A stretch of 20,605 bases of DNA from Salpingoeca rosetta (taxonomy: Eukaryota > Protista > Choanoflagellata): positions 1 to 20,605 of the forward strand of contig JAWQFM010000024.1 in the NCBI GenBank assembly GCA_033442325.1. Direction: 5' to 3'. A program made the translations under genes and the position numbers. Shown here piece after piece: positions 164 through 3,100 of this stretch (the stretch's first letter is position 1; the number at the start of each line of letters is the position of its first letter). The notes under the pieces are model-generated. The model did no database searches, was not told the origin of the DNA, and worked only from the letters and a program-made list of their open reading frames with translations.

Positions 164-3100
164 CATCGAGGACGTCAAGTCTGTTGTGCGGCGACGGTTT
201 CTGCTGCGGAATCTCGGCCTTGAGGTCTTCTTCCGCTCCGGCGACACGCTCTACCTTGCGTTCCAGAACAAGGACGACAGGTGCTGCAATGTGGAGACGG
301 TGATGGCTGCGGTGACTGCTGCCACGACGGCAGTGAGTGAAACGTAACTCAGCAGGCTGTGTTGGAGGCTGTGCTCACGGGTGTTCGTGCGTTGCTTGCA
401 GGGATGATTTCTTGACGGCACTGCTGCGCCAGCCATGTCTCAAGCTCGAGGAGGACAGCAAAGTAAGCCCCTGTGTGTGTGTGTGTGTGTGTGTGTGTGT
501 GTGTGTGTGTGTGTGTGTGTGTGTGTGTGTGTGTGTGTGTGTGTGTGTGTGTGTGTGTGTGTTGCACTAGCAGCACCCATCAACAGCACCTTTTTTTTTT
601 TTTTCACGACCACATGTGCTCCCGCCCACTGCCCGACCACCAGGACAACGTGATGATTGCGTGGCAGAACGGGGCCATTTCCAACTTTGATTACCTCATG
701 TACCTCAACAACCTCGCAGACCGCAGCTTTACTGACCTCGCACAGTACCCGGTCTTCCCCGTGAGTTTTTCCGGCTGATCATGGCTGTGCGCACGTGTAT
801 GTGTACCTGTGTGTCCGTGTACATGTGTCTGAATGTCCACATGTGAGTGAGTGTGAGCGTATGCCCTCGCCTAGAACTCTCCATTTCCTCACACGCCCCG
901 GTGCCTGGATCTGCAGTGGGTGATCAAGGACTACACGAGCGACACCCTCGATCTCGAAAATCCAGAGACGTTCCGTGACCTCTCAAAGCCAATGGGTGCG
1001 ACGTGTGGGACGTGTATGTGTGTGTGTGTGTGTGTGTGTGTGTGTGTGTGTGTGTGTGTGTGTGTGTGTGTGTGTCGGCGTGATGTACGATTGTGCATAT
1101 GCACGCGTCTGTGTTTTTGCGTGTGCCTGTGTCTGTATGCACGTGAGTCGTGCATTCAGAACCCCTGTTGCATTCCCTTCCACCCGCGCGCGTTCCTTGT
1201 TGACATGCCCATATTGACTGCCCCTCAGGCGCGCAAAACCCGGAGCGACTCAAGGACTTCATCAACAGATACAACGTGAGTGTATTCTGCTCCTTCTTCT
1301 TGTGTACTTTCAAGTGTCAGTTGTCTCTCTCCCAACCCCTATGTGCTCGTGCGCCTCATCCACTACCACCACCACCACCACCACCATCATCATCATCATC
1401 ATCATCACCCACCACGAAGGAGATGCCGGCTCCCAAGTTCCATTACGGCACACATTACTCCACGCCAGGATATGTCCTCTTCTACACACTTCGCGCAGCG
1501 CCAGAGTATAGCCTCAATCTCCAGGTGGGAATGCTTGTGTGTGTGTGGGTGTGTGTGTGGGTGTGTGTGTGTGTGTGTGGGTGTGGGTGTGGGTGTGTGT
1601 GTGTGTGTGTGTGTGTGTGTGTGTGTGTGTGTGTGTGTGTGTTGATAGCCTTGCGAAGCTGGCCCCATCCTTCCTTGCTCACAACAACCGTTCTACGTTC
1701 CCAACACACATGTACACACGGCAGAACGGCAAATTTGACGCTGCGGATCGCCTGTTCCGGTCCATCGCAGACACGTGGAACAACGCATACTCAGGTGTGA
1801 CACTCGTGCAGTGTGAGGATGAGGGTAATGGGGGAGGGGGTGCACGGTGTGGTCTTATTCGCTCGCCTGGAGTGTTGCACGGCCCGTTGTTGCTCCGCCT
1901 GCCACTTGCTTGCTGGCTCCAGACCTCGCCGTCACCTTTCCCTTGCTCTTTGCCTGCAGGCATGGCGGACGTGAAGGAGTTGATTCCCGAGTTTTACATG
2001 CAGTCCACCGATTTCCTGCTCAACCTCAACAACCTTGACCTCGGCGTCACGCAGCGCGGCGAGCGGGTACGCTGAAAATGTGGGGTTCCATCAGTGATTT
2101 GCTGGAATGTTTGTGGAGGTGGTTGTGGAAAAGCTTGCTTCCTTACATACGCGCTGCCGTCATTTGCAACAGGTTGGCGACGTGATTCTGCCGCCATGGG
2201 CCGACAGCGCAGCTGACTTTCTGGCCAAATGCCGCGAGGTACGTGTGTGTGTGTGTGTGTGTGTGTGTGTGTGTGTGTGTGTGTGTGTGTGTGTGTGTGT
2301 GTGTGTGTGTGTGTGTGTGGGTGTGTGTGTGTGGGTGTGTGTGTGTGTGTGTGTGTGACTCGTGAGTTTTCGTTACAACAGTGACGTTGTACACATGATC
2401 TAACGTGTTCCCACCGCCATCCTTTGTTGCCTTTGGTGTCCAATGCCCCCTTTTCCCCATCAGGCGCTGGAGTGCGACTATGTGTCGCAGCGCATACACC
2501 ACTGGATCGATCTCATCTTTGGTTACAAGCAGACCGGCCCGGAAGCCGTCAAGGCACACAACCTCTTCTATTATCTCACGTGCGACCGAAACGGCGTGTT
2601 CGTGCTTTGTGTGTGTGTGTGTGTGTGTGTGTGTCCATTATCCTAGCCTTAAATCCTTCCCGCTCGCGCAGACAACGCGGCGGCCAGCTAGAGTAACCGG
2701 CATGATTTACCCTTTATCCGCTTAGTATAGGCGCTTAGGATTGGGCGGGAAATTAGGACGGTTAAGTAACCTATCTAACGACGTCGCTGTGAGCCTAATA
2801 GAAGTCCTCGGCAACCTGACCGGAATTATGACTAAGGCGTAACAAGCTACCGATGAGCACTATGCTCTATGATTATCCTGTAATTGTCTTGGTCCAAGTC
2901 CGCACGTTTGCGGCCCTAGGTCATGCTTTTAACCAGTACTGGCCTTGGTCATGCGAGCTGATGCCTAATCTCACGTACGTGGGATAAGGAAGTGAACACA
3001 CAGTGTTGTGTGTGTGTGTGTGTGTGTGTGTGTGTGTGTGTGTGTGTGTGTGTGTGTGTGTGTGTGTGTGTGTGTGCCCTTTGCTGGACAACTTTCCTCA

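Follow-up and report, generated by a model that had tools for sequence, protein, structure and literature searches.

A random-like block within a GT microsatellite of the Salpingoeca rosetta gene PTSG_11431 is probably filler from the reference assembly

The window, i.e. the whole stretch of DNA analysed (20,605 nt; Salpingoeca rosetta, contig JAWQFM010000024.1 of assembly GCA_033442325.1), is made up of three scaffolds with runs of 100 N between them, at 6705-6804 and 13142-13241. As these runs join separate scaffolds, adjacency over them is not sequence evidence. Positions 1-6704 correspond to GL833026.1 (6704 nt; Broad assembly GCA_000188695.1, from 454 and Sanger data) in reverse orientation, with 100% identity and no gaps, and the block described below therefore belongs to the public deposited assembly (GL833026.1 3703-4070, on the opposite strand). 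GL833026.1 encodes PTSG_11431, annotated as 'BEACH domain-containing protein' of S. rosetta ATCC 50818, and an exon translation identified this one protein at 100% identity (P0001 = EGD82827.1 / XP_004987559.1). A complete Beach domain is followed by WD40 repeats (Pfam), and spliced alignment of P0001 placed 18 exons and 17 introns within 653-6046. The start of the public model is 653 nt away from the end of the scaffold, and its BEACH domain begins at residue 3; the model lacks the GRAM/PH region that a FAN-like protein should have at its N-terminus, and this region was probably lost at the scaffold end. The features in and around intron 8 are:

2464..2579, plus strand: exon 8 of PTSG_11431, corresponding to BEACH profile positions ~196-235 (spliced alignment; Pfam Beach, E=1.7e-16)
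2580..3131, plus strand: intron 8, GT...AG, 552 nt as assembled and 184 nt without the block (P0001 alignment)
2608..2634, no strand assigned: (TG)13.5 tract to the left of the block (TRF); the left read-derived contig ends within this tract
2635..3002, no strand assigned: the block, 363-368 nt, balanced, non-repetitive and without read support (composition, run look-ups, likelihood scan)
3003..3076, no strand assigned: (GT)37 tract to the right of the block (TRF); the right read-derived contig begins within this tract
3132..3257, plus strand: exon 9 of PTSG_11431, corresponding to BEACH profile positions 236-276 (spliced alignment; Pfam Beach, E=9.5e-08)

The exons flanking intron 8 match adjoining positions of the Beach profile and P0001 is continuous over the junction, indicating that the intron is real; as the profile is contiguous over intron 8, the coding sequence is complete there and nothing has been lost. 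Spliced alignment bore out the view of a first-pass annotation, made from the letters alone, that this intron is a length outlier at 552 nt, the other 16 introns of PTSG_11431 being 106-237 nt long. The range given in that annotation for the other introns stands, and its total of 19 introns does not, the public model having 17. Mean intron length in S. rosetta is 255 nt genome-wide (PMC4054682). It had also been proposed that removal of the block would leave an intron of ~180 bp, and subtraction of 368 nt indeed gives 184 nt, about half of which is GT tract.

The remainder of the window carries a tRNA synthetase exon, a telomere and genes for structural RNAs:

6497-6616, minus strand: 5S rRNA gene (67 bits in Rfam), located where the first scaffold ends and ~450 nt downstream of the BEACH-WD40 gene
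10400-10840, plus strand: core exon of a class II aminoacyl-tRNA synthetase (PF00587, E=2.9e-09), in the second scaffold
13244-13881: (TAACCC)52, then 8.5 copies of a 39-bp satellite, directly after the second N run
14089-20605, minus strand: rDNA unit adjoining the telomere and satellite
17743-17924, minus strand: 5.8S
18601-20605, minus strand: SSU, cut by the end of the window

By its motifs, the exon at 10400-10840 looks threonyl-tRNA-synthetase-like. Since (TAACCC)52 starts immediately after an N run, the telomere lies at a scaffold end rather than inside the preceding genic sequence. LSU covers only 24-1888 and 1925-2120 of the 3401 model positions, and this partial coverage indicates a 28S truncated beside the satellite.

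The block in intron 8 lies exactly between (TG)13.5 (2608-2634) and (GT)37 (3003-3076), and TRF identified no tandem repeats between these tracts. The likelihood boundaries are 2635-2997, with the closing ACACA (2998-3002) being host-like. Base frequencies are nearly equal (A.250, C.255, G.242, T.253) and all 16 dinucleotides occur near 1/16, the commonest being TA (n=32). These values and the TRF result uphold the earlier description of a high-complexity block with even composition and no internal microsatellite. The hand count of ~30 TA against TA-poor neighbours was also accurate: the host sequence around the block is low in A and in TA, and the median TA share of equally sized host windows is about a quarter of that in the block. 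Observed/expected ratios in the block are 1.38 for TA and 1.06 for CG. TA is under-represented across nearly all natural genomes, as Burge, Campbell and Karlin are said to have reported in 1992, and the TA value of the block is the reverse of this.

Chi-square values against uniform letter usage were 0.2 (k=1), 10.1 (k=2) and 66.6 (k=3) for the block, all within i.i.d. simulation, compared with host medians of 18, 104 and 309, although such uniformity tests are low-powered at 368 nt and rDNA windows also pass them. An order-3 Markov likelihood scan (host vs uniform) identified 2635-2997 as the sole uniform-favoured segment in the two genic scaffolds, placing the outlier status of the block beyond chance. 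The block nevertheless departs from perfect i.i.d. randomness. Stop-type trinucleotides number 53 vs 34 expected (P=0.0007, post hoc and largely reflecting the TA excess), and 99% of simulated sequences have less even base counts. A 26-nt imperfect palindrome at 2964-2989, with 13/15 arm positions paired, would be found in about one in 100 random sequences of this kind and is taken as a chance occurrence.

Independent read evidence came from Logan contigs of listed runs (2013-2025), in which a contig hole alone proves nothing and from whose coverage many runs and some filtered records are excluded. For 2380-3260, 20 runs from 9 studies hold ~0.48 of the sampled words, equal to the share of the unique flanks, and in four runs that are probably RNA the figure is 0.23, close to what the exons contribute. 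A look-up restricted to the block (2640-2998) listed no run, from any organism, with the sampled 31-mers. In four runs, each from a different study, a 291-nt contig was placed on 2380-2596 and a 325-nt contig on 3085-3260, with no differences from the window and word depths of 20-104, and no contig was placed on 2620-3069, leaving the block and both junctions uncovered. The first-pass annotation had itself named the absence of junction-spanning reads as the mark of an artefact, and as far as contigs show this is the situation here, with no read-derived contig on either junction.

Word index and contig placement agree with each other, as do all four placed runs. The 291- and 325-nt contigs, each bounded on both sides by GT/CA tracts, were retained in the contig sets, and a unique block of ~360 nt would thus have been retained too. 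At 27 nt the TG tract falls short of the 31-letter word length used in the graph, so the left contig would extend into the block if the junction existed; it ends in the TG tract in 4/4 runs. The left junction seen in the window is therefore apparently not part of the real genome. As the block is unsupported in the listed S. rosetta runs, there is no near-identical copy elsewhere in the genome either.

Hallmarks of a biological insertion were sought in the block itself. Rfam cmscan with E up to 10 returned nothing near a gathering score, the best match being SCARNA2 (20.5 bits vs gathering 48), mostly through the GT tract, and folding gave no extra stability over shuffled sequences (z = -0.19 on the plus strand and +0.09 on the minus strand). 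No homologous sequence that might show conservation or covariation turned up in the collections searched. A structured RNA was rejected on the Rfam and folding results, and with it the earlier suggestion of an intron-hosted RNA. The core had been described as lacking ORFs, and none of at least 70 aa covers 2726-2970; all six frames of the block are closed, with 6-11 stops per frame, and the two longest ORFs within it have no Pfam match, so that coding sequence was likewise rejected.

The first-pass annotation had further proposed a recent insertion event with GT microsatellites as its target, possibly of a non-autonomous element. The best end-to-end match between the termini is 21 nt at 71%, leaning on host TGTGTGT vs ACACACA, and does not amount to terminal inverted repeats (TIRs). 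Self-BLAST identified no terminal repeats and no second copy of the block in the 20.6-kb window, and neither TSD nor tail was found at the block, where a TSD is in any case not judgeable within a microsatellite. A mobile element was rejected on the lack of TIRs, TSD, tail and second copy. Targeted insertion did not survive these results and the absence of run support, nor did a non-autonomous element, with no TIR, tail, family or further copy.

Comparison (blastn) of the block with plasmids, phages and E. coli genomes yielded no real match, plasmid alignments being 25-48 nt with E of 1 or more, and two exact 24-mers had no match in viral contigs, GTDB genomes or JGI metagenomes; cloning host, vector, phage and bacterial contaminant were rejected on these searches. 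Contamination or an artificial insert had been considered as possible as a biological insertion in the first-pass annotation: an artificial insert is now favoured, while searches for contamination were negative. Sanger slippage noise was rejected, as identity to the true flanks is 0.20-0.32 at all offsets, with no rise. Introduction of the letters after deposit is a poor fit, since the window and public GL833026.1 (opposite strand) carry an identical block.

Missing from read-derived contigs, random-like in make-up and without any biological hallmark, the block is most likely filler that entered the reference assembly where a GT microsatellite could not be resolved or a contig broke off, rather than S. 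rosetta DNA. It has (TG)n to the left and (GT)n to the right, with read-derived contigs ending in both, as at an assembler break, and has no independent read support in listed runs or Logan contigs. The S. rosetta genome was assembled with Newbler (454) and merged with Sanger data by ARACHNE HybridAssemble, with manual gap closing, and 1.49% of final assembly bases are below Q40 (PMC4054682). Contig or gap counts were not found in supplements to the genome paper, nor was a description of N handling found in papers using HybridAssemble.

In the proposed sequence of events, the 454 and Sanger assembly would have failed to read through the (GT)n microsatellite, leaving two contig ends in the same GT tract. 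The resulting scaffold gap, of estimated size, may then have been rendered as pseudo-random A/C/G/T by software incapable of holding N, a step given about an even chance within this explanation. The Broad 2-bit base format is a candidate, and would turn gaps into pseudo-random letters for want of an N. Such filler letters would have persisted into the deposit or the served copy. The particular software step that made the letters is one that we infer; as the public record has letters and not N, it would have to lie upstream, in the assembly. Counting against filler are the deposited record itself, which is in A/C/G/T, and the imperfect fit of the block to i.i.d. letters. The real intron would be an ordinary GT-rich intron, ~184 nt long should its two tracts directly adjoin.

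Natural DNA of chimeric or contaminant origin, in which a non-coding piece from another organism was joined into the consensus via false GT-repeat overlaps (e.g. from a stray read, or from a plasmid or fosmid clone that was chimeric), is an unlikely source. Its borders would lie where false overlaps are expected, within a microsatellite, a short CA run at the right end of the block adjoins the GT tract, and a prey bacterium was present in the sequenced culture (PMC4054682). However, no run of any organism is listed for the block and E. coli, plasmids, phages, viral contigs, GTDB and JGI metagenomes all lack a match. Six closed frames are also unlike bacterial DNA, and TA at 1.38 and CG at 1.06 observed/expected contrast with the TA shortage generally known from natural DNA. 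Loss of a block that is real in all lines from the contig sets, by filtering or graph clean-up, would account for its absence from these sets, given that filtering removes some records and that missing contigs prove nothing, but is scarcely probable in view of the concordance of word index, contig placement and four runs, the retention of nearby short contigs with the same repeat bounds, and a 27-nt TG tract too short to break a 31-mer graph had the junction existed.

A real insertion private to the reference DNA, either a rare allele or a line-specific event in the 2008-9 culture that was later lost or never present in other laboratory lines, is very unlikely. It could have arisen, for instance, by capture of foreign DNA as a broken GT tract was repaired. 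Presence of the block in the deposited assembly is as expected under such an event, and a GT tract making up around half of the native intron means that no special targeting would be needed. Against this, every listed run (2013-2025, 9 studies) is without the block while the flanks are identical, and TSD, TIR, tail and ORF are all lacking in a sequence of random-like make-up; absence of a source copy from the genome's own reads also means that there is no element family from which it could derive. The specific version in which foreign DNA of viral, symbiont or prey origin, not otherwise sequenced, genuinely inserted where a GT microsatellite had broken in the reference culture, and is missing from every later laboratory line, is rated as hardly likely at all.

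If the block is filler, as preferred here, it is evidence neither for a novel element or RNA nor for a mechanism of targeting. The reference genome of S. rosetta, a species widely used as a model of animal origins, instead appears to carry letters absent from the organism, and filler-type stretches of this kind can disrupt gene models or imitate 'foreign' insertions.

Among known systems, intron-hosted small RNAs (snoRNA, scaRNA, miRNA and stable intronic RNAs) resemble the block in their intronic location, lack of coding sequence and length of a few hundred nt, but differ from it in that the block has sub-threshold Rfam scores and shuffle-like folding and is absent from read sets. Mino, an R1-clade non-LTR retrotransposon, reportedly targets (AC)n according to Kojima and Fujiwara, and the block shares with such microsatellite-specific elements its position inside an (AC/GT)n tract. 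Unlike these elements and their non-autonomous derivatives, it is a single copy, without reads, 3' tail, ORF or family, and fails every testable defining feature of microsatellite-targeting elements. Another parallel is the scaffold gap or low-quality filler at a microsatellite in hybrid 454/Sanger drafts. The block differs from the usual scaffold gap in being written in A/C/G/T rather than N, but it lies, like such filler, exactly between the two ends of one dinucleotide tract, has a length within the usual range of gap estimates, is random-like and without read support, and restores a typical intron on removal.
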